From Cyanophora paradoxa CCMP329 (taxonomy: Eukaryota > Plantae > Glaucophyta), in assembly GCA_004431415.1 (NCBI GenBank), contig QPMI01000036.1, positions 186,001 through 250,000 on the forward strand: a DNA stretch of 64,000 nucleotides, given 5' to 3'. Below are positions 806 to 13,094 of this stretch, piece by piece. The stretch's first letter is position 1, and every line of letters starts with the position of its first letter. A program made the position numbers and the translations under genes. The notes under the pieces were generated by a model. It saw only the letters and a list, made by a program, of their open reading frames with translations. It was not told the origin of the DNA and did no database searches.

Positions 806-3800
806 CTAAAGGCCGGCGGCGGCGGCCGCCTCCTCGATGGAGGCGAGCTCAGCACGGACGGACTCACACTGCCGCCTGAGCTCCTCCAGTTCGGCGGCGC
901 CGCGCTCACGGGCGAGGTCCGCTGCTTTCGACGCGTCCTTCAGGTCTTTCAGCTCCTGTCTAATGACTTGGCGGTACCGTGCAGGCAGCTGCTTGCGGAA
1001 ATCCGTGAGCCAGGCATGCGCGTGCACGATCGCCTGTCAAAACGGTCAGATCTATAGCTATCCCCAGAGATCGATCAGCTCGTCTCGCGTACCTTCTTGG
1101 AGACTCTCTCCACGATTGTTTTGTAAGTGTCATCCGTCTTCAGGACCTCCAGAATGTCCTCCAGGCAGACCTCGCTGCAGGGGCACACCTGCTTGCGGCG
1201 CTTCGAGCTCTGCACATGCACATTCGTCGGCAGCGCGTCGCGCGACCGCTGGGTGCCTTGGGTGCACCGCAGGCGCGTTGGAAAGGGCCTCGAGCACCGC
1301 AGCGCTAGCCGCACGCCGCCTGCGGTTGCGGCCCTTGCGCTTCTGGGCAGCCATGAGCGGGGCAAGCTGCATGCGCAGCCGCTGGCGGCGCCAGCACGGC
1401 ACGGCGCACGGCGCGTGCAGCGGCAGCGCTGTCGACGACGTTGGCAAGCTCGTAGTGAAATTCGTCCAAGACAGCGATGAGGAGATCGTTTTTGATGAAG
1501 GCCCACGCATCCCTGACGACGTTCTTGAAGACTTTATCTACCGCCGCCTGCAATCGCCTGCGCCGCATGCGCATTCCATCAGCGACCAGCCGCAGTGCCA
1601 GCTGCAGCAAGTGCACGTGGCAAGGTGGGCGCACGGATTGGACGTGCTGACGATGTTGGTGTAGGCGGCTTCCACGGCCATAGATTGCAGATCTAGACTA
1701 TGTACATGTTGGTGTAGCGCCGGCAGTACGGGGCTGCACTGGTCGATGAGGGCCTGCTTCCAGCGGGGGAAGACGGAGCTGTTGAGGATGCGCTGGAAGA
1801 CGGGGCCGATGCACTTGATCTCCTCGATGAAGCGCTTAAATGAGAGGCCGAAGAGGACAGAGTGTTCCAGGCTCTTCTGGTCCACGTCGCGCCCAACGGA
1901 CCCCACAGCATCATTTCCAAACCGATTCTTGAGAAGGCCCTGCACCGTCTGCGCATACTGAAGATAAGCGGCCAAGGATCGCGATCGCAGCAGCGCGTGG
2001 CGCTGCCAGGCTGCAGCTGGACACGCACGGAGCTCAGGAAGTCGGTCTCGGCATCGCGACAGGCCTTATCCCAAAACTCCCCGAATTCCTTACCGAATTC
2101 CTTGTCGACGCTAGCCATTACGCTATGGCCTCCGCGCTCCAGCGTCTGCACCTTGCTCAGCTGCCGCTGCAAGGCCCGAAACGCGCCTTGCAGCATCTCC
2201 TGCAGCTTCTTTCGATCCGCCGCCGCTCCCAACGACGGCAGCTTGAGAGTCTGCCACGCCGGGGCATGAGCGCAAATCAAAGCAGCGCAAGCAGACGCTG
2301 GCGGGGCGGGGCGGCGTGCGTTCTCGTAGAGGAGCAGGCCGCGGGTGAGGACGGCATGCGCTGGCGCGTAGGCCTTCTCTCGAAGACGCTGGAGGACGAT
2401 CTTGCAGCCCTGGCCCCTCAACAGCGCCATGATCTCCGCGTAGTCAGGGCGAGCCGTGACGGGCATTGCCTGTGCAGCCTCATGCCCCTCCACGGCGAGC
2501 GTTTTGAAGTACTTCGGCCCCGCGTTGTAGGTTCCAAAGAAGAGCCGCTTACGCCTGCGAAGCCCGTGGCATTGGCAGTGGCGGCGGCGCTAGGGCCCGA
2601 GCTTGAGGGGGGAACACACGCTGCAGAACCCCACTGGCTTGCGGGGAGCTGACTTGCCCACTCCTGAGGCCCGCACATGTAACGACAGGGGGGGCGGCGG
2701 GCAGCGCGGGCAGGGGCGCACCTGAAGGGCGCTGAGCCGCCGGCTCTTCATGGCCGATCGGATGCTCTGGACGTCGACGTCGCCATCGCCGAGCTCGCGC
2801 CTGGGATCGCACGCGATAAGGACAGCGTGCTCCTCAGGTCGGGCAACGAGGTCGCCGAGAGGCTCCTGGAGGGAGGCAAAGACAGCCAACGGCGTGTCGC
2901 CTCCCGAGTCGACGTGTACGAGCATGTCCACAGGCTGCACTGCTCGTGCTGCCTCCCGCCGCGCTGCATCGGTCTCCGTCGAGCCCACGCTGTCGACCTG
3001 CCGCCCCGGCCTGTCAGCTTACGCTTGACGGACCGCGGCGTGCGGAACGCAGGATGCGGCAGCGGCTGCACCTGGCGGAGGCCGACGCAGTGCGCACTCG
3101 GGACGCCCATCTCCACGGAGCGGACGAGGCCCCAGCAGCCGCCATTCACGTTGGCAGTGAGAAGCGTGAGGACACGCCCCACGCCCCGCTTTGCCTCCTC
3201 CCGGTCCGTGCAGGCTGTGTCCAAGCCGGGGCCGCCCCAGGCGTCAACTTGACGACTCGCAATCGACAAGCTAGAGCTCGCGGAAAGGCCGGTCTGGCGC
3301 ACCGGAGTGGTAAAGCACGGTCTTGCCCAGCAGCTCCTCGAAAAGCATAAGCTCCCTCGGCAGCTCGAAGTGCTCGGGGCTATCGGCAGCGATCAGCAGT
3401 GACAAGTTCCAGCGCGCGAAGGATATTAATATTGCGCATGCAAGGCGCACGTGAGGCGGTCAACGTCGTCGAGCGTTGCGGGCGTCAGGGACTCATTGCC
3501 AGCCATGGCGAGGGCGAGGGCGATTGCGGCGCGCTCCTGCATCCCTATGCGTGCCTCGCTGTCTTCGCGGTCCAAGTCGCGGATCTGCTCAAGCGCTGCC
3601 AGGCCCGCGGCCTTCGCGTCATCGCGCTCCTTCCGGTCTTTGAACGTCACGAGCACGTAGAAGAAGGGTGAGCCGAGCGTCACGATGGGCACGCTGCGGG
3701 GCTGTGAGGGTCGCGATTGGCGGCGGGGAGAGCGGGGGCGGCAAGCCTGCTGGTCGCGTTGACGGTGCGGCTCGGAAGGATGCGACCGGACACAAAAATG

Positions 3801-6800
3801 CCCTTCTCGTTGCCAGCGCGCGCCTCAAGGGCGTTTAAGAGGTGCCGTATACGTTTGGCAAGTTCGTCTTGTGGGGCGCCGAGAATCTCCCGTAGGCGCT
3901 GCACCTGGTCCATTGGGCGCACCGGCATCGAAGGTGCTGGTGAGCACCCGAAGCGCTGTGCATGGCGTTAAGGTTGGCACCGGCACGAAGTCTATCGGCT
4001 CACATCGGGGGAGCCGTCGGGGTCGGCAGGGAGTGCGGCAACTGCAGCGATGAGGCTGGCAAGTAGGGCGAAGTCCGCTGGCTTGGGAAGCCCGTCACAG
4101 ATGAGGCCCGAGAGGCACGTCGACTTGCCTGCCGGGCGTCGGAGGAACTGGTCAGCACGGGCGAGAGCGGCTCGAGGTGGGCAGGCCTAGGTGTTGAAGC
4201 GGGCGCGGCAGCGCTAGCGCACCGGCGCGGGTCCACCCCGCGAAACAGTTCTGCTGGAGGGCGATCTCGTCGATGGTCTTGTCATTGATAAGCTCCTGTA
4301 CCTGTGTACCAAGCTCCTTCACCTGCGCTCCCGTCGCGCCGGCCCCTCGAGCTCGCCCCGCGGCACACCCGCGAAGCCCAGCGCGCCTCGAGCTCGGAGT
4401 GGTCCCGGAGCGAGTCGGCGCCAATGTCGATCGTGATGCAGGCCTGGGAGGCGGACGCCCGGGCGTTGAGGTTCGCGATCCGCTTCGCCCAGTGTTGCGT
4501 ACGGCGCACCACATCGACGGCGTCTGCACAAAAGCCCGTGAGCGGCGCGGGCATCCAGAGACGGGCCAGAGTGGGCGGGGCGGGCCTGCAAGGCCAGCGT
4601 TGCGCAGGCCAAGGCGGTCGAGAAGGGCGAGCAGCTGCGCCTCAGGGACAGCTGGGCCCTCAGCACGAACTAGTTTGTCCTCGTACTCGGCCGGGTGCTC
4701 CCACACCAGCTCCTCTGAGAAGGTTCCATTGAATCGCCGCCGGAGCTCGAACGTGCCCTTCTGCTTGTTAAGGCGAGACTGCGGCGGACCTCGCAATCGG
4801 AATGGCCGGGATGGGGAGTTCGGGGTCGGTCAGCAGGGCGCACGAAGAGGATGGCCTCGCCGGGGTACTGAGGGTCCTTCAGCTCTGTTTCGTTTTCGCG
4901 GAGCTCTATGAAAGGTTATAATTAGCGGTGAGAGCGAAGCGCGGAACTCGGAAGGCGGCAGAAGCGAAGCGCGCACCCCATTCGAAGTTGATGAGGTTAG
5001 GGACGTGGATGACCGCGCCAGCATTGATGATGCGGAGGGCTGGAGCGCACGGAAGAGGCCAAAGCAGCTCGTAGACGCGCCGGCGCCCGCCGCCGGCCTC
5101 TTCGATTCGCAAGGCAAGCGTGAGGACGACTTGCGGAGGGCAGCCTGCGGCGGTCGGCGAGCCGTACTGGCTCTTCGTGACGCGATTCTCTCTCTGCACA
5201 GGCCGAATAAGGCAGGGCGTGGCAAAGGTAGAGGCATGCCTAGGGCGGAAGGCGGACCTCATGAAGGGAGAGGATGGAGATGCTGACGTCGGGAAAGCGC
5301 TCGGCGAGAACCGCAAGAGCCACCGCGTCCGCGAAGGATTCGAGCTCGGGCTCGGGTTCAGCGCGATCCATCACGAGCTTGAAGGCCCTTGCTACCGCCA
5401 GCTCGCGATCGGTGGAGTCCGCCAGCTCGGTCGTCTCGCCCAAAATGGCGAAGGCCTGCCAGGCGAGCTCGACCAGACTTGGCAGCACTGGATGCTCAAC
5501 AAACTTCAACGCAGTCTGCACAGGGCGGTCGGCCAGCGGACCAGCGGCCGAGCTCGAGGCCTACAGGCGCGCAGGCAGCGCGGACCTGGGCCCAGAGGTC
5601 CGTGGCGATGGCGGCGCGCAGTTCGCCCTCCAACGCTGCGCCACGGCTGGATGCACTGTCAGGCCTAGGCCTGGGCCTACTGTGCGAGCGCGAGTCCAGG
5701 AGGGCCTAAGAGTGGGGGGACGGGGGGAAGGGAAGGGGGCGGACTGGAGGGGGGCAGGGGGGGGAGGGGGAGGAGGGGGGGGGGGGGGGGGGGGGCGGTA
5801 GGGAGGGAGGGGGAAGAGCGGGGGAAGAGGGGAGGGTGGAGAGGAAAGGGAGGGGGAGGGAGTGAGGGATGGAGGGGGTTGGGGGGGAGGGGAGGGGGGG
5901 GGAAGGAGGGGGGGGTAGTTACGCACAACAGGCTGGCGGCAAGGACAGCGAAGAGGCTACCACGGACGGCATCGGGCCGGCAGCCGATGGCTTTGTAGAT
6001 GTCGTCAATGCAGGCGACAGCTGTGGGGCCACCGGCGAGCCGAGCAGCGCGGACGTTTAGAGCGCACGCCGCCACCCGCTCCTCGACGCCCATGTCCGAG
6101 ATCTTGGACTTCAGAAACGCCAGGTCCTGCACCACATTGTTTGGCGCGGCTCCAAACGGAGCGCGGCGGAATGGCAAAAGGGCAGACGCAGTCCGGACCT
6201 TGACGACAACCTCAACCGGAAGCCCCTCCGGATTCTGCTTCTGGTCCTTCTCCGCCTCCTTTGTCTCCGGTCCTTCCTCGTAGCTCCAGGGGGCGGCTGC
6301 GATGAGATTCAGGGCAGCCACCGATGGCGGCAGAGTACACGCTACCCGTGTCCTCTCCACGAGCTGGGGCGTCCGTGGGGCTCGACCCCTCCCCTGCTCC
6401 CGTCGGAGGGGTGCCCATCAGCGGAGCGGCCACCGACGGCGCCCGTGCGGCCACCAGCGGCGCGTCCACCGACGGCATCCGCGCGGCCGCCAGCAGCGCG
6501 GCCACTGACGGCACCGCCGCGGCTGCCAGCGGCGCGGCCACCGACGGCGCCGGCGCGGCCGCCAGCGGCGCGGCCACCGACGGCACCGCCGCGGCCGCCA
6601 GCGGCGCGGCCACCGACGGCGCCGGTGCAGCCGCCAGCGGCGCGGCCACCGACGGCACCGCCGCAGCCGCCAGCGGCGCGGCCACCGACGGCGCCGGTGC
6701 AGCCGCCAGCGGCGCGGCCACCGACAGCACCGCCGCGGCCGCCAGCGGCGCGGCCACCGACGGCACCGGCGCAGCCACCAGCAGCGCGGCCACCGACGGC

Positions 6801-8112
6801 ACCGCCGCGGCCGCCAGAGGTGCAGTCATTGACGGCGCGATCTCCAGCCGCGTGCAGTTGGCCGCCAGCACTGCGGCCGACGGCGGTGCGGCCGCTGATA
6901 ACGGCTTTGTGGTGCGCTTGCGGGCGTGCTTGGGGCTCGGCTGGGGGACGCGTACGCCGTCCGGATCCGAGTCGGCCTCTGGCTGAACCCGCGGCCGGAA
7001 GAGCTGTTTAACGGAGACAGTCTGCCCGTCGTGCAACTTGACCTCAGCCTTATGAAGCGCAAGCGAGTGCGCCGGCCCGCCGGTGACGCGGCTCCAGACG
7101 TCGCCAGCCCAAGTCCGCCCCTCGGAAATCTTCGTCTCTCCGTCCTCTTCGAACTCCACCATGCCTGGTTCCTGACACACCTGCATTCACACAGCAACAC
7201 CCTGAGCCTCGGGGCGAGGCGGGGGCGCGGAGGGGAGGAGGCGCCGTGCAGACGGCGGGGCGCACGCAGCACGTGTATCCGTACAGGGAGAGTGTCATGC
7301 CTGGGGCAACCATGCCTTGGTGGACGAGCATGCCTAGGCCGCAATCCTTGCGGGGCCCCCTCGACCTCTTCCTTGAACTCGAGCTCGAGACAGCCGCGCT
7401 CAGGAGAGCCGGCGCATGGCCATGGGTCCCGGGGCCCTGCAAGGGGACGAGGTGCAAGAAGAGTGATCAGCGGGGCCGGTAAGATCCCGAGCTCACGGCG
7501 GACGGCGCGCACGCTTGCGACTGCGCTCGAGGTCGAACTCGGCAGAGGCATGGCGCTGGCGCTGGCCAACTCATGCATATGCACGTACGCGTTCGAATTC
7601 CCGGCCGCAAACAGCTGCAGCACCGAGTCATCGGCAGCGAGCTCGATTGCGAGAATGCACTTCCTCGATATCTGCGCGTACCGTTCCCTCGCTTATTCCC
7701 GGGAGTCCTTGCGTCGTCGACGTCGATGGGGGCGCTTCGCGCGCGTGCGCATCAAACTTGTGCTCCGTCCCAAACATCCGATCACGGGCTGCAATCGACA
7801 AAGGTCAACCGTGACTGACCACACGCGTTCGCGCGCTCGCTCGAGGCCAGCATATGCATGTGTACGGCGGCAACTACTAGGCTAGGGACATATACATGTC
7901 AACTCGGCCGGACCACTCTAGAGCCGCTTGCAAAATTCAACGGGGACCGTCAGCGGCGGCCCGCGGGAGCCCAGCGCGCGCGGGCGGGCCTCTGTCGCAC
8001 AGCGCGCTCTAGAAAGCTGCCGCAGGCGACCACGCACCTTGCAGGACGCTGTGGAAGCGGTTTGTCGTGCTCGACACGATGTGTCCTTTGATGCCGAGGT
8101 GTGGACCCCCAT
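806..8112 (-). CDS. Large multi-exon protein: MGxxxS leader, RAMA-like domain, Ala/Pro 12-aa repeats, inactive OTU-like domain, dynamin-superfamily (NUGGC/SLIP-GC-like) GTPase and helical C-terminus
   Basis: Splicing the GT-AG intron 4129-4222 builds the P-loop CFAGWTRAGKSTCL. Downstream are LLNAL…ILPSRTVNATSVPIV…FYVLVTF and VRSVEMGVPS…GLRQVDSVG (G3 DxxG, ~2985-2997), then long helical exons ending …EEAAAAAGL* at 806. RAMA-like segment GLGMLVHQGMVAPGMTLSL…EDGETKISEGRTWA…DGQTVSVKQL lies at ~7000-7345. The 5' exon structure is uncertain. Confidence 0.7.
5714..5916. repeat. G-rich low-complexity tract with long G runs inside an intron of the GTPase gene
   Basis: Runs of G interrupted by A, seen directly. 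Confidence 0.85.
6421..6840. repeat. 36-bp tandem repeat, ~11.5 copies, alternating two variants; encodes (SVAAPLAAAPAP/SVAAPLAAAAVP)n on the minus strand
   Basis: Unit gcggcgcggccaccgacggc… recurs every 36 bp (e.g. 6421, 6601, 6781). Confidence 0.95.
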
Positions 8113-8159
8113 GTCGGGCCAGACCGTCCGGCGCGGGGCAGGGTACGCAAAAGCGTTCT

Positions 8160-8325
8160 CGCGGTCCGACCAGGTCGGACCGCGGGGCCGGGAGTACGCG
8201 GATTTCGAACCAAAGCGCCGATTGCTCCCCGGAGGGAGGGGTGAGGTTGCACGGGGGTAGCAATTGGCGCAGCGTCGGTCGCGGACGGTCCGCCGGCGCC
8301 GGTGCGAAATCCGCGTACTCCCGGC
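8160..8325. promoter_or_regulatory. Hairpin (12-bp arms, 8160-8184) plus 25-bp inverted repeat (8187-8211 / 8301-8325) upstream of the minus-strand ATG; also present in copy 2 (11219-11384)
   Basis: cgcggtccgacc-a-ggtcggaccgcg, and gccgggagtacgcggatttcgaacc versus ggtgcgaaatccgcgtactcccggc (one mismatch). A TATA-like ctatatat sits at ~8431. Confidence 0.7.
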
Positions 8326-8711
8326 AGACCAAGCTAGCCTGGCAAGCCTCGTTAGCGCTAGCTTCGCGTACCCACTATCTATCACATAACCCGTAGTACT
8401 AGTACGGTACCGGTAGCTAAGCTATCCCAGCTATATATCCCGCTCAGCAGCGGCTGGACAGTGTTGACGTCGACGTACGCGTCGACTAGTACTCCCCTCA
8501 CGCACGGTGCGCCCCGGTCGTGTGTGCCGTGCGTGAGGCGAAGGCCTCCCGTTACAAAAGCGCTTTATCCGGCGGCCGCCGCCTCCTCGCGCTCCAAGCG
8601 GTGGTCCGCGATCCGCGCGTCCGACGGTCGGGCCTCTAATGGTAGCCTCGCCGAAAGCCAAAACGAGCTCGAGCCAAACGAACAGCAGCTGCAGCAGCAA
8701 CAACGAAAGCG

Positions 8712-9350
8712 ATGCGGGCTCTCCTCCTCGCCGCGCTGGCGCTTGCGGCCGCGCTCCTCGACGCGCAGCCGGCCCTAGCTGGCGGCCACAGCACCCGGTG
8801 ACCAACGCACAGACTCCTCGCTCAAATTGAAGCATGCGTCGGTGGCACGTGCGTTCCCACAGGCGGAGGTGGAGGCCAGGGCTGTACAAGCAACTCCCAG
8901 TGCTGGCCCCTGATCTGCGACACCATCGCCACGACCTGCGCATCGTGCACTGCAGACTCGCAGTGCGACCCCGCCGGCAACACCGGCTATATCTGCGGCA
9001 GCAGCGGGCAGTGCATCAGCGCCAGCGCTACCGCCACGCCGTGACCGAGCGCCAGCCCGAGCCGCACGCCCTCGCCCAGCGCCAGCCCGTCGCCCTCTCC
9101 CTCGCCCTCGCCCTCGGCCACGCCCTCGCCCAGCGCGACGCCGGCCGCGACGCCGACCGCGAGCACGTCCCCGAGCCCCTCGCCCACCGCCGCGGTGACC
9201 CCCCCCCTCCCCCCCCCTCCCCCCCGCCCCTTCCGCGGGGCGTGCGACTCGGGGCGGGGGCGGGGCCCGGGGCAGCCGACGAGGGTCCTGGACCTCGCCT
9301 TCCTCCGCAACGCGTACCCCGACGTCGTCATGTGCACCTCTCCCCGCCGG
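8712..9350 (+). CDS. Secreted Cys-rich protein (signal peptide + 8-Cys domain), stopped by in-frame TGA at 9042-9044 before a Ser/Pro/Thr stalk; 3' part missing in this copy
   Basis: MRALLLAALALAAALLDAQPALA, intron, then GGGGGQGCTSNSQCWPLICDTIATTCASCTADSQCDPAGNTGYICGSSGQCISASATATP*PSASPSRTPSPS…. Confidence 0.6.
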
Positions 9351-9685
9351 CTTCATGACTCAGTGATCAAGCTTCAGGTTTAGTTTAAATAAGCTTCAGC
9401 TGCAGGCTTTAATTTCAGGGTTTCGAAATTCGAATTCTGAGTTCAATGCAAGTTTCGAATTCGAATTCGGCCCAACCCCCCTGCGATTTTTGATCATAAG
9501 CTTTTTAAGAACATCGATATAGACGATTCGCAAATATTAATTGAATCGGGTTTTAATTTGGGGTAGCTATAGTACTAGTGTCGGTTGATCATGAGCCCGG
9601 CCCACGGCCTGAATTCATGAAAGAAACACTTGCAAATATTGGGCATTTCATATAAGACACAAGACGACTTCAATCGAAAGAACTC

Positions 9686-11171
9686 CTAATGATCATGATA
9701 GGAGGGGTGCACGTGCTTGGGGAGCTCGAGGTCACTGGGTCTGTGCATGTGGCCAGCGATCAGCTCACACGCAGCCTGGTACACGGCTGCATTGCCTGCC
9801 CCGCGCTGCTCAACCCATTTCACCGGTGTGAGCATCATCTACCGATGAACCACGGTCACGTTGGGGGAATTCGCACGGGGGGGGGGGGGGGGGGGTTTGG
9901 AGCGCACATCGTAGTCACGGGGCAGCGTGACCGAGTTGCGTTCCACAATAAAAACTGCGCATGCGCGAGAGGGCTTATGCCATAATACAAAAAGCCGGGA
10001 AGCTTGAAATCCAGCTTGGAGCAGCGCATGCGGACCAGGGAACTTCTGCAGCCGGAGTCGGTGGTGTGCATACTGCGCGGGGGCGTACTTCAGTGTCGCG
10101 CGGCAGCACACACTCTCGGGTCTGCGTGCAGAGAAGGACCTGCATCTCGTCGTCGCAGTTCCTGGACGCCAGGTACGCTGGCGAGAGGAAGCAGATGAAC
10201 GAGTGGCAGTGGGCCATCGCATCCTGCTCAGCAGACTGAGGCGCGCTGCGGTCCGGGGCCGGCTGCACCGCTTGCGCACCCCGATTTCCTTCATCCACAG
10301 CTGGCCCGGCTTAAGCTCGCGGTCGATCCTGCACCGGCGTCGGGTGTCAGCGATAGCGATGTGCGGCCAGGCGCCGGGGCGGGGCGAGCCAGATGGAGAG
10401 CCCGGCGGCCTTGAGGATGTCGCAGTACCGGAAGACGACATCGGCATCCGCGTGTGCATAACTGCGCGCGGCGGTCATGATCAGGCCCCAAGCATCCACG
10501 GCGGACAGGCGCGCGTGCCATGGGTAGGGAAGACGGCGCACGCGCCTTACGAAACAGTCCCACTTCTTGACATTGTCTGTGACGACCGGCGCTGATATCG
10601 GCTTTTGTGGCGAGCTCGGCAGAGGCATGGCCGTGGCGCTGGCCAACTCGAGCAAGTTCCGGGCCGCAAACAGCTGCAGCACCGAGTCATCGGCAGCGAG
10701 CTCGATTGCGAGAATGCACTTCCTCGATATCTGCGCGTACCGTTCCCTCGCTTATTCCCGGGAGTCCTTGCGTCGTCGACGTCGATGGGGGCGCTTCGCG
10801 CGCGTGCGCATCAAACTTGTGCTCCGTCCCAAACATCCGATCACGGGCTGCAATCGACAAAGGTCAACCGTGACTGACCACACGCGTTCGCGCGCTCGCT
10901 CGAGGCCAGCATATGCATGTGTACGGCGGCAACTACTAGGCTAGGGACATATACATGTCAACTCGGCCGGACCACTCTAGAGCCGCTTGCAAAATTCAAC
11001 GGGGACCGTCAGCGGCGGCCCGCGGGAGCCCAGCGCGCGCGGGCGGGCCTCTGTCGCACAGCGCGCTCTAGAAAGCTGCCGCAGGCGACCACGCACCTTG
11101 CAGGACGCTGTGGAAGCGGTTTGTCGTGCTCGACACGATGTGTCCTTTGATGCCGAGGTGTGGACCCCCAT
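9686..11171 (-). CDS. TIR-domain protein (TIR_2/bacterial-like) sharing the MGxxxS leader exons of the GTPase gene
   Basis: Spliced product …KKWDCFVSYAHADADVVFRYCDILKAAGLSIWIDRELKPGQLWMKEIGDAMAHCHSFICFLSPAYLASRNCDDEMQYAHHRLRLQKFPVFIVERNSVTLPRDYDMMLTPVKWVEQRG…* with TAG at 9686-9688. It matches TIR box1 (DxFxSY) and the S-x-[W/N]-C-x-x-E motif. The 5' exon structure is uncertain. Confidence 0.85.
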
Positions 11172-12310
11172 GTCGGGCCAGACCGTCCGGCGCGGGGCAG
11201 GGTACGCAAAAGCGTTCTCGCGGTCCGACCAGGTCGGACCGCGGGGCCGGGAGTACGCGGATTTCGAACCAAAGCGCCGATTGCTCCCCGGAGGGAGGGG
11301 TGAGGTTGCACGGGGGTAGCAATTGGCGCAGCGTCGGTCGCGGACGGTCCGCCGGCGCCGGTGCGAAATCCGCGTACTCCCGGCAGACCAAGCTAGCCTG
11401 GCAAGCCTCGTTAGCGCTAGCTTCGCGTACCCACTATCTATCACATAACCCGTAGTACTAGTACGGTACCGGTAGCTAAGCTATCCCAGCTATATATCCC
11501 GCTCAGCAGCGGCTGGACAGTGTTGACGTCGACGTACGCGTCGACTAGTACTCCCCTCACGCACGGTGCGCCCCGGTCGTGTGTGCCGTGCGTGAGGCGA
11601 AGGCCTCCCGTTACAAAAGCGCTTTATCCGGCGGCCGCCGCCTCCTCGCGCTCCAAGCGGTGGTCCGCGATCCGCGCGTCCGACGGTCGGGCCTCAATGG
11701 TAGCCTCGCCGAAAGCCAAAACGAGCTCGAGCCAAACGAACAGCAGCTGCAGCAGCAACAACGAAAGCGATGCGGGCTCTCCTCCTCGCCGCGCTGGCGC
11801 TTGCGGCCGCGCTCCTCGTCGCGCAGCCGGCCCTAGCTGGCGGCCACAGCACCCGGTGACCAACGCACAGACTCCTCGCTCAAATTGAAGCATGCGTCGG
11901 TGGCACGTGCGTTCCCACAGGCGGAGGTGGAGGCCAGGGCTGTACAAGCAACTCCCAGTGCTGGCCCCTGATCTGCGACACCATCGCCACGACCTGCGCA
12001 TCGTGCCGTGACCGAGCGCCAGCCCGAGCCGCACGCCCTCGCCCAGCGCCAGCCCGTCGCCCTCTCCCTCGCCCTCGCCCTCGGCCACGCCCTCGCCCAG
12101 CGCGACGCCGGCCGCGACGCCGACCGCGAGCACGTCCCCGAGCCCCTCGCCCACCGCCGCGGTGACCCCCCCCCTCCCCCCCCCTCCCCCCCGCCCCTTC
12201 CGCGGGGCGTGCGACTCGGGGCGGGGGCGGGGCCCGGGGCAGCCGACGAGGGTCCTGGACCTCGCCTTCCTCCGCATCGCCGGCCTCGTCGTGCGCCCCT
12301 CTCCGCCCGC
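10615..12310. repeat. Segmental duplication copy 2
   Basis: See copy 1. The 91-bp deletion is at ~12006, at a GC microhomology. Confidence 0.97.
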
Positions 12311-13094
12311 CCCGCCGCCACCCGCCCACCCGCCCCCGGCCCGCCCCGCAGGCGGACCTCGCGAACCTCACCGCCTCCGGCAAGGCCGTCGTCCAGAGCG
12401 TGCGCCCCCGCCCCCCCTCGATCGAAGACGTCGAGGGCGGTCGCCCGCGCTGGATGCGAGGGGCGGTCTGACGGGTGGGGCAGGACGGCTCCGTGCGCGT
12501 GGCCATCGACGCCCCCCTCTAGAACGCCGTCCAGGGCGGCGGCGACGCCGTCTTCCGCATCGCCGGCAGCGGCTTCCCCGTGCTTGCTGCCCCCGGCCCC
12601 GCCCCCGTGCTCCCCGCCCGACGCCCGCTGCAGGTCGGCGAGAAGATCGCCGTCTTCATCGTCAACCCCGGTGCGTGTACCCCCTCTGTTCGGCTCTCGA
12701 CGGCTGACGCCTCGGCAGCGACGGGGGAGTCCCGCCAGGCCCCCTACGCGGAGATCACCTCCGCCGGAGAAATTCAGTTCAGTGCGCGCCTCTCCGGGCC
12801 CTTCCGCCTTCCCTCCTGGCTCTGAGATGTCGCAGCCGCGCCCAGCTTCGCGCGCCGCGCGCTGCAGGCGATGGCCGCCAACACGCCCTACGACGTCCGC
12901 ATCGTCTTCGTGAACGGGGGGTACGTCACCCTCGTCCTCGGCGGGGTGCGCCACCGTACCTTTCCTTCTATCCCGATCTCCGCCCCACCTCCCCTTGAGA
13001 CCCTCCGCAGGTCTTCCGCTGGGTCAGCGTCGCCGCGACCAACTCGGTGCCTTACTACCCGAACGCCGCCGCCGCCGCCGCCCAGGTGCTTTAG
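11770..13094 (+). pseudogene. Secreted Cys-rich/Ser-Pro-rich surface glycoprotein with C-terminal beta-rich domain, frameshifted
   Basis: Signal peptide MRALLLAALALAAALLVAQPALA. The 91-bp deletion removes half the Cys domain and shifts frame. Downstream exons include PTRVLDLAFLRIAGLV, VGEKIAVFIVNP, PYDVRIVFVNGGYVTLVLGG and VFRWVSVAATNSVPYYP…*. Confidence 0.55.

Follow-up and report, generated by a model that had tools for sequence, protein, structure and literature searches.

At the start of a 64,000-nucleotide (nt) stretch of the genome of the glaucophyte Cyanophora paradoxa CCMP329 (contig QPMI01000036.1, positions 186,001 to 250,000; this whole stretch is the window here), the minus strand carries a real gene, at 806-7777, that is spliced and transcribed and whose architecture is kept in a second paralog. 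We read it, with a probability of about 0.55, as a single expressed nuclear gene for a multidomain protein of ∼1,660 residues in which a RAMA domain is joined to a divergent dynamin-type GTPase and which acts on DNA. Spliced RNA contigs and the paralog establish the gene; the motifs and the language-model neighbors of the GTPase domain indicate that it is probably of the dynamin type, and structure prediction supports a RAMA fold for the N-terminal domain. A sequence-only reading of this DNA had found the combination unfamiliar among described proteins. Our literature search likewise found no paper that pairs "RAMA domain" with "dynamin," and within the literature searched, the pairing of RAMA with a dynamin-type GTPase is new.

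Gene structure and transcription

Stop-to-stop translation of the region yields many short protein-like pieces whose frame changes from one piece to the next, which is the appearance of a gene with many introns. Spliced, the minus strand of 806-7777 forms one gene model with 27 exons, which encodes ∼1,661 residues and has no in-frame stop in a phase check. All 26 introns have GT-AG or GC-AG ends and measure 48 to 94 nt, except for one of 280 nt. GC-AG ends occur in 4 of the 26 (2251-2319, 3694-3746, 4323-4386, and 4524-4585), and the donors fit G[TC]NCGC. The GC content in the window is 63 to 83%; for the C. paradoxa assembly, a GC content of 67.6% and a mean intron length of 86 bp have been reported (PMC6704402).

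To place the introns, we used contigs of three RNA-like runs, each of a different study (X1, X2, and X8), and of a DNA run (X12), aligned to 1600-7599. The RNA-like runs have 15 listed joints, with ends CT..AC or CT..GC, that is, GT-AG or GC-AG on the minus strand; the DNA run has none of these joints, and its contig is collinear with the window. All introns obtain canonical ends once they are shifted inside the ambiguity of the aligner. The other introns were placed by joints, contig extents, and depth arithmetic. For the intron at 7437-7512, X1 depth in the bin 7400-7599 equals 124 exonic letters, an exact fit, and for the 72-nt intron at 6127-6198, X1 depth in the bins of 6000-6399 equals 128 and 33 letters. 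The 280-nt intron (5647-5926) was fixed in three ways: the depth of X1 amounts to exactly 47 exonic letters in bin 5600-5799 and 73 in bin 5800-5999, only this donor fits the splice phase, and the paralog is continuous over the junction (...GLFRDAVTEGDL...). Exons 1, 25, and 26 and the intron at 6297-6345 were taken from the public gene model or from splice logic, not from RNA. A single 221-nt intron near the C-terminal end (1189-1409) was considered and replaced by the public-model introns 1343-1409 and 1210-1267, which match the intron size of the genome. RNA evidence reaches at least 7631, and the ATG at 7777 comes from the public model. Of the bounds given by the sequence-only reading, 806 and 7440, the first is the stop codon, and the second lies about at an exon boundary (7436), past which the gene runs on to at least 7631 in RNA and to 7777 in the public model.

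The public model of this gene (P0001; EukProt tig00000144_g9056.t1; 1,696 residues) is 100% identical to the translation over exon 2722-2997. It disagrees with the RNA contigs at two places, where the 280-nt intron is read as poly-proline and part of exon 12 (4387-4523) is skipped. At both, the paralog sides with the RNA-based version; the public model is wrong at these places, and we provide an RNA-supported correction. The whole-protein tests reported below used P0001 and the paralog, and exons were searched one by one.

One intron, of 65 nt, differs among the studies (4779-4843; Table 1). Its splicing in X8 is marked by 13 loose letters at 4844 that equal 4766-4778 exactly, while the X1 and X2 contigs run unbroken over 4586-4905. 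When retained, this intron brings stops in all three frames, and the predicted product of ∼757 residues would have RAMA and the central domain but not the GTPase. Retention could reflect a regulated isoform or just unprocessed RNA. In addition, one contig of X1, X2, and the DNA run X12 touches both 5074-5092 and 6541-6561, with 29 other letters between them; it most likely belongs to another locus with shared short GC-rich repeats and does not reflect a rearrangement of the gene.

An exhaustive HMMER search with exon 2722-2997, which holds the G3 and G4 motifs, against 1.84 billion representatives found three proteins only: P0001, its paralog P0002 (EukProt tig00001098_g7068.t2; 1,535 residues), and one spurious low-complexity match. 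In word searches, the whole paralog retrieved itself alone, and the two paralogs were all that the conserved core of the G domain retrieved. Pfam searches with stop-to-stop pieces and exact exons found nothing, and Pfam, PADLOC, and NCBIfam searches with the full proteins and single domains, to an E value of 10, found nothing useful. P0001 and P0002 are 35% identical over 1,335 residues and 36% identical over the N-terminal domain. By region, identity is highest in the G domain (54%), followed by the region before it (48%), the central domain (41.5%), RAMA (39.5%), and the C terminus (34.6%). The two proteins align over their whole length; thus, the full domain order is conserved in a diverged paralog.

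These comparisons also bear on whether the gene is a decaying or functionless fusion specific to its lineage, one that is transcribed without any selected function. Its relatives were found only within this organism, and an intron that carries stops is retained in two of the three studies, as such a fusion would lead one to expect. Yet the 27-exon frame is intact, and at an overall identity of 35% the nucleotide-binding motifs are invariant, the G domain is kept at 54%, and the architecture is whole. We regard a functionless fusion as highly improbable.

The probable GTPase domain and the RAMA domain

The motifs of the GTPase domain emerge from the spliced model. The P-loop (G1), GWTRAGKST, forms only once the intron at 4129-4222 is spliced out, as the sequence-only reading had proposed: its codons are 4224-4238, then a split codon made up of 4223 and 4127-4128, and then 4118-4126. 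This intron (94 nt, GTGCGC...CAG) is removed in the X1, X2, and X8 contigs and not in the DNA run. The paralog has GWNGVGKST at this place. The G3 motif is DSVG, also as first read, and lies ∼265 residues from G1. SRT[VT]NATSSVPI, which is common to both paralogs and precedes a hydrophobic hairpin, is a candidate switch-I by sequence. A canonical [NT]KxD G4 is missing, again in line with the earlier reading; at the expected spacing we find hydrophobic-A-[CF]-D-P-R, which retains the Asp but not the N/T-K. The two paralogs agree without exception in GxxxxGKST, hhhhDxxG, and the Asp of G4. When residues 585 to 1000 of P0002 were used in an ESM Atlas feature search, the 10 best clusters were all Dynamin_N clusters, with a score of 0.93 and 173 to 180 shared features.

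The RAMA fold is supported by structure prediction. In the AlphaFold2 (AF2) model of P0001 residues 85 to 200, which are identical to the spliced exons 3 and 4, the core has a predicted local distance difference test (pLDDT) score of 85 to 90. The best PDB matches of this model in Foldseek were CcrM (6pbd) and MPND (7ydw and 7ydt). With VIA-align, Z scores were 9.0 for CcrM and 8.8 and 8.7 for MPND, with 82 to 88 residues aligned at a root mean square deviation of 2.3 to 3.7 Å, versus 4.7 for the next, unrelated PDB entry. The CcrM and MPND structures are those that contain a RAMA domain, and RAMA sequences are poorly conserved (PMC9963953). An ESM Atlas shape search returned PF18755 in all 8 rows listed for the 30 nearest models (69 to 98% of members), at template modeling (TM) scores of 0.56 to 0.64 by query. 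We base the fold assignment on the core confidence of the model, the top Z scores of CcrM and MPND, and the PF18755 neighbors. The Pfam RAMA profile matched neither P0001 nor P0002, whether whole or as the isolated domain, down to an E value of 10, a miss that is in keeping with how poorly RAMA sequences are reported to be conserved. A comparison of the RAMA part with the PDB by sequence and profile gave nothing meaningful, and a word search with the RAMA open reading frame gave no match. The domain called RAMA-like from sequence thus has structural but not profile support. The basic RKRSR that had been noted before it is in place, immediately N-terminal of the domain, and, as a sequence motif, may be a nuclear-localization or DNA-contact patch.

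Several results weigh against the proposed combination of domains. The G domain has no match to the Pfam Dynamin_N profile (PF00350) at an E value of 10, none in NCBIfam or PADLOC, and none in the PDB by sequence or profile; when its alignment was compared by hhalign with E. coli RdcA/CrfC, the P-loop only was aligned. The dynamin assignment comes from one language-model search together with the motifs, and nucleotide specificity is uncertain because G4 is noncanonical. At the other end of the protein, no RNA contig of X1, X2, or X8 crosses 6233-6685, between the RAMA exons and exon 5. Two further searches were made with the G domain: tblastn against plasmids gave chance matches only, and a wider profile of bacterial dynamins, drawn from genome contigs, captured only Escherichia-level relatives, some of them frameshifted, and was dropped.

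The first of these points raise the question of whether the P-loop domain is dynamin-like at all or belongs to another class of nucleoside triphosphatase (NTPase), for example, the ABC/SMC-type ATPases or other TRAFAC GTPases, in which case it would be a different motor or switch. The P-loop of the paralog, GWNGVGKST, is like the ABC-type GxNGxGKST, with a weak ABC_tran match (E value, 0.08) at the P-loop only, and the unmatched Dynamin_N profile, the noncanonical G4, and the long distance between G1 and G3 would all suit such an enzyme. The motif order would not: hhhhDxxG after a strand, with an Asp 62 residues on, is the GTPase pattern, unlike the hhhhDE of Walker B. Moreover, the ten best ESM neighbors with a family are all dynamin-family, and the paralogs have no conserved ABC signature motif in common. 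We consider another NTPase unlikely. The dynamin-type assignment of the sequence-only reading is supported, less firmly than RAMA, by the Dynamin_N neighbors in the ESM Atlas and the conserved G1 and G3, but not by Pfam, NCBIfam, PADLOC, or PDB sequence searches.

The stretch that RNA contigs leave unbridged could instead mean that RAMA and the remainder belong to different genes or transcripts, merged wrongly by both the sequence-only reading and the public model; X8 has no coverage above 6000, and retention of the intron at 4779-4843 reveals a mixed population of transcripts. On either side of the gap, the transcripts are continuous. RAMA exons 2 to 4 are joined by splicing within one X1 contig, and an RNA contig is unbroken over 6686-7177; contigs also bridge exons 8-9-10 in X8, exons 9 to 19 in X2, and exons 10/11 to 24 in X1, so that the central domain, the G domain, and the stalk are on the same transcripts, with the central domain linked to the GTPase in both X2 and X8. 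One gene from the central domain to the C terminus is therefore supported. Exon 4 (6346-7180, 835 nt) contains a 36-nt tandem repeat that encodes a 12-residue Ala/Pro/Val/Ser linker, and the DNA contigs stop at this same repeat, which argues that the gap is an assembly effect. The frame of exon 4 is open throughout, up to a canonical donor in phase with exon 5. P0002, a single model, has no such repeat and an acidic linker in its place, and it has the same order of RAMA, central domain, and GTPase. From the open frame, the donor phase, and the order in the paralog, we conclude that RAMA is joined to the rest, and the public model agrees; for this join the evidence is indirect. The one-gene reading thus stands on RNA contigs from the central domain through the C terminus and on frame, paralog, and public model only for RAMA, and we consider separate genes very improbable.

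Central domain, C terminus, and neighboring genes

Between the linker and the GTPase lies a region which, with 41.5% identity between the paralogs, is by sequence conservation a real conserved domain. It had been read as a pseudo-OTU domain. The four strings said to follow the OTU motif order do occur in that order, in exons 6 to 9 (4977-6126). Where Cys and His were proposed, this gene has Ser and Val and the paralog Pro and Thr, in an OTU alignment that is itself unverified. OTU identity is not supported. The Pfam OTU profile (PF02338) matched neither P0001, P0002, nor the central domain, even at an E value of 10; PDB sequence searches with the central domain and with the N-terminal half gave no match at an E value of 10; and an ESM feature search with the N-terminal half gave no usable match. 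The AF2 model of the domain has a pLDDT of 41. With this model, Foldseek gave a best E value of 0.14, and the OTU-type entries 8cmr, 7mia, and 3pse were among the top 50 weak rows, at a probability of ≤0.14; a VIA wide search gave a best Z score of 4.3 and no OTU, which we treated as noise.

The proposal behind the pseudo-OTU was that a dead OTU domain senses ubiquitin, so that the protein would couple the detection of modified DNA and of ubiquitin to an oligomerizing GTPase. The order and spacing of the motifs are like those of the OTU Cys-loop, variable loop, and His-loop, and the positions are kept in both paralogs. Helices followed by three strands are predicted, with the "Cys position" at the N terminus of a helix, in the low-confidence model that also gave the weak OTU-type rows. 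Eukaryotic RAMA domains are, furthermore, often fused to deubiquitinase (JAB) domains (PMC4738411). Besides the empty profile, sequence, and fold searches, what speaks against the proposal is that both proposed catalytic positions are replaced, and differently in each paralog. We find a ubiquitin-sensing dead OTU unlikely. Sensing of modified DNA, the other half of the proposal, would depend on a preference of RAMA for 6-methyladenine (6mA), on which published work is contradictory: the RAMA domain of MPND binds double-stranded DNA without 6mA preference (PMC9963953), in contradiction to another study, in which 6mA binding by RAMA was reported (PMC6591016).

The C-terminal region is presumably a helical stalk. 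It has only weak coiled-coil Pfam matches and contains a basic patch, KRKGRNRRRR, at 1313-1342 in a basic-patch scan; no hydrophobic membrane paddle was seen in a hydropathy scan.

Upstream, the gene shares its leader with a neighbor. Through a tandem duplication of ∼3 kb, with 98 to 100% identity between 7534-9325 and 10611-12292, the two genes have in common their upstream region, coding exon 1 with intron 1, and most of exon 2. When 7480-7900 and 10555-10960 were aligned, they were identical for ∼300 nt and then diverged right past the MPLPSS codons. An exon piece of the neighbor (9978-10310, minus strand) matches Pfam TIR_2 with an E value of 3e−5 and 24.8 bits, below the cutoff of 28. Both duplicated copies also have long Gly/Arg/Pro-rich open frames on the minus strand, at 8778-9359 and 11836-13023.

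The adjacent TIR-like gene with the same duplicated leader makes a defense or stress role plausible but unproven. In its fullest form, this would be a eukaryotic innate-defense module in which RAMA senses foreign or 6mA-containing DNA of viruses or bacteria and nucleates on it a GTP-driven polymer of the dynamin-like part, with the central domain possibly a second sensor. The TIR-like gene would be coregulated, since it has the same duplicated promoter and leader, and the retention isoform that lacks the GTPase would be regulated. We hold such a module to be unlikely as a whole. The features of the gene and its neighbor are collected in Table 1.

TABLE 1 Features of the probable RAMA-GTPase gene and its upstream neighbor, with positions in the window
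Feature	Coordinates	Strand	Basis or remark
Whole coding region	806..7777	-	Stop TAG at 806-808; RNA joints, splice refinement, and public model peptides map onto exons
Leader, exons 1 and 2 with intron 1	7513..7777 (exons 7682-7777, 7513-7614)	-	Copy upstream of TIR-like gene
Basic patch RKRSR (then GPRK)	7359..7373	-	Exon 3 translation; just N-terminal of RAMA
Predicted RAMA-fold domain, residues ∼98-184	6998..7343	-	Split by intron 7181-7265; AF2 and fold searches
Tandem repeat linker	6419..6817	-	Tandem Repeats Finder (TRF): period 36 nt, 11.1 copies, 88% matches; in frame
Conserved central domain, exons 5-9	4977..6219	-	41.5% identity to paralog over 205 residues
Long intron	5647..5926	-	280 nt; low-complexity, pyrimidine-rich on coding strand
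65-nt intron	4779..4843	-	Spliced in X8; retained in X1 and X2 contigs
Probable divergent dynamin-superfamily-type GTPase domain, exons 13-20	2620..4322	-	ESM neighbors; 54% paralog identity
G1 P-loop, GWTRA/G/KST	4118..4238	-	Split by intron 4129-4222; joint in X1, X2, and X8, absent from X12
Candidate G2/switch-I, SRTVNATS (then S-VPI)	3749..3772	-	Suggested by near-invariance between paralogs (BLASTP)
G3/Walker B, VDSVG	2983..2997	-	Hydrophobic strand before; LRQVDSVG here, IRLVDGVG in paralog
Degenerate G4, ACDPR	2800..2814	-	AFDPR in paralog; 62 residues past G3 Asp
C-terminal region, ∼445 residues	806..2554	-	Presumed helical stalk and coiled-coil tail; 34.6% paralog identity
TIR-like gene	∼9686-10860	-	Upstream neighbor; shares duplicated leader

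Proposed action on DNA and comparison with known systems

On the reading that we prefer, of a RAMA domain joined to a dynamin-type GTPase, the protein would run from the leader and basic patch through RAMA, the long and flexible Ala/Pro repeat linker, the central domain, and the GTPase to the presumed helical stalk. RAMA would tether it to double-stranded DNA, either chromatin or foreign or modified DNA, a role suggested by the RAMA domains of MPND and CcrM, which touch the DNA backbone (PMC9963953). The GTPase and stalk might then self-assemble on the DNA and hydrolyze GTP there, so that the protein would be a nucleotide-driven scaffold or remodeler on DNA and not on membrane. If so, the gene would add a new partner to RAMA, whose 6mA preference is disputed. 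With the TIR-like neighbor and the leader cassette common to both genes, an immune role can be put to the test in an alga that grows in culture.

Among RAMA proteins, the closest in fold are MPND (7YDT and 7YDW) and CcrM (6PBD): the predicted fold is the same, at an identity of only 17 to 20%, and as in MPND, RAMA comes after a basic stretch and before an acidic or low-complexity one. The partners differ. The founding survey of RAMA fusions (Iyer et al., PMC4738411) names JAB deubiquitinases and chromatin domains as partners in eukaryotes and methylases, nucleases, and McrB-type AAA+ proteins as partners in prokaryotes, and no dynamin is among them. The prokaryotic RAMA-McrB-type restriction fusions of that survey share the logic of the present protein, RAMA with an oligomerizing motor driven by GTP or another NTP. 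However, McrB is an AAA+ GTPase with a fold unlike that of a dynamin-type G domain, and McrB systems pair with a nuclease, none of which was seen in this gene. With OTU deubiquitinases (PF02338), the likeness is confined to three short motifs in the same order and to a layout of helices followed by strands; neither profiles nor structures match, and both paralogs lack the catalytic Cys and His.

Dynamin-superfamily GTPases are known mainly as membrane remodelers. NUGGC (SLIP-GC), to which the sequence-only reading likened the GTPase, is a large vertebrate GTPase of the dynamin family that is said to be active in the nucleus; to our knowledge, it has no RAMA domain, and the ESM neighbors found here are bacterial-type dynamins and not NUGGC. 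By language-model features, the closest proteins are bacterial dynamin-like proteins (Dynamin_N), such as E. coli CrfC/RdcA and B. subtilis DynA. Like these, the present protein carries G1 and G3 and a large region at its C-terminal end. Profile searches showed no similarity, and the protein differs from them by a degenerate G4, an insertion that sets G1 and G3 ∼265 residues apart, the absence of a visible paddle, and a fusion to a DNA-binding domain. CrfC has its site of action at the nucleoid and at replication forks (PMC6374313), and DynA plays a part in defense against phages (PMC8844932). DNA-linked and defense-linked dynamins thus have precedent. If the reading proposed here is true, this family would extend dynamins to assembly templated by DNA, for which E. 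coli CrfC and vertebrate NUGGC are the only hints known to us so far.

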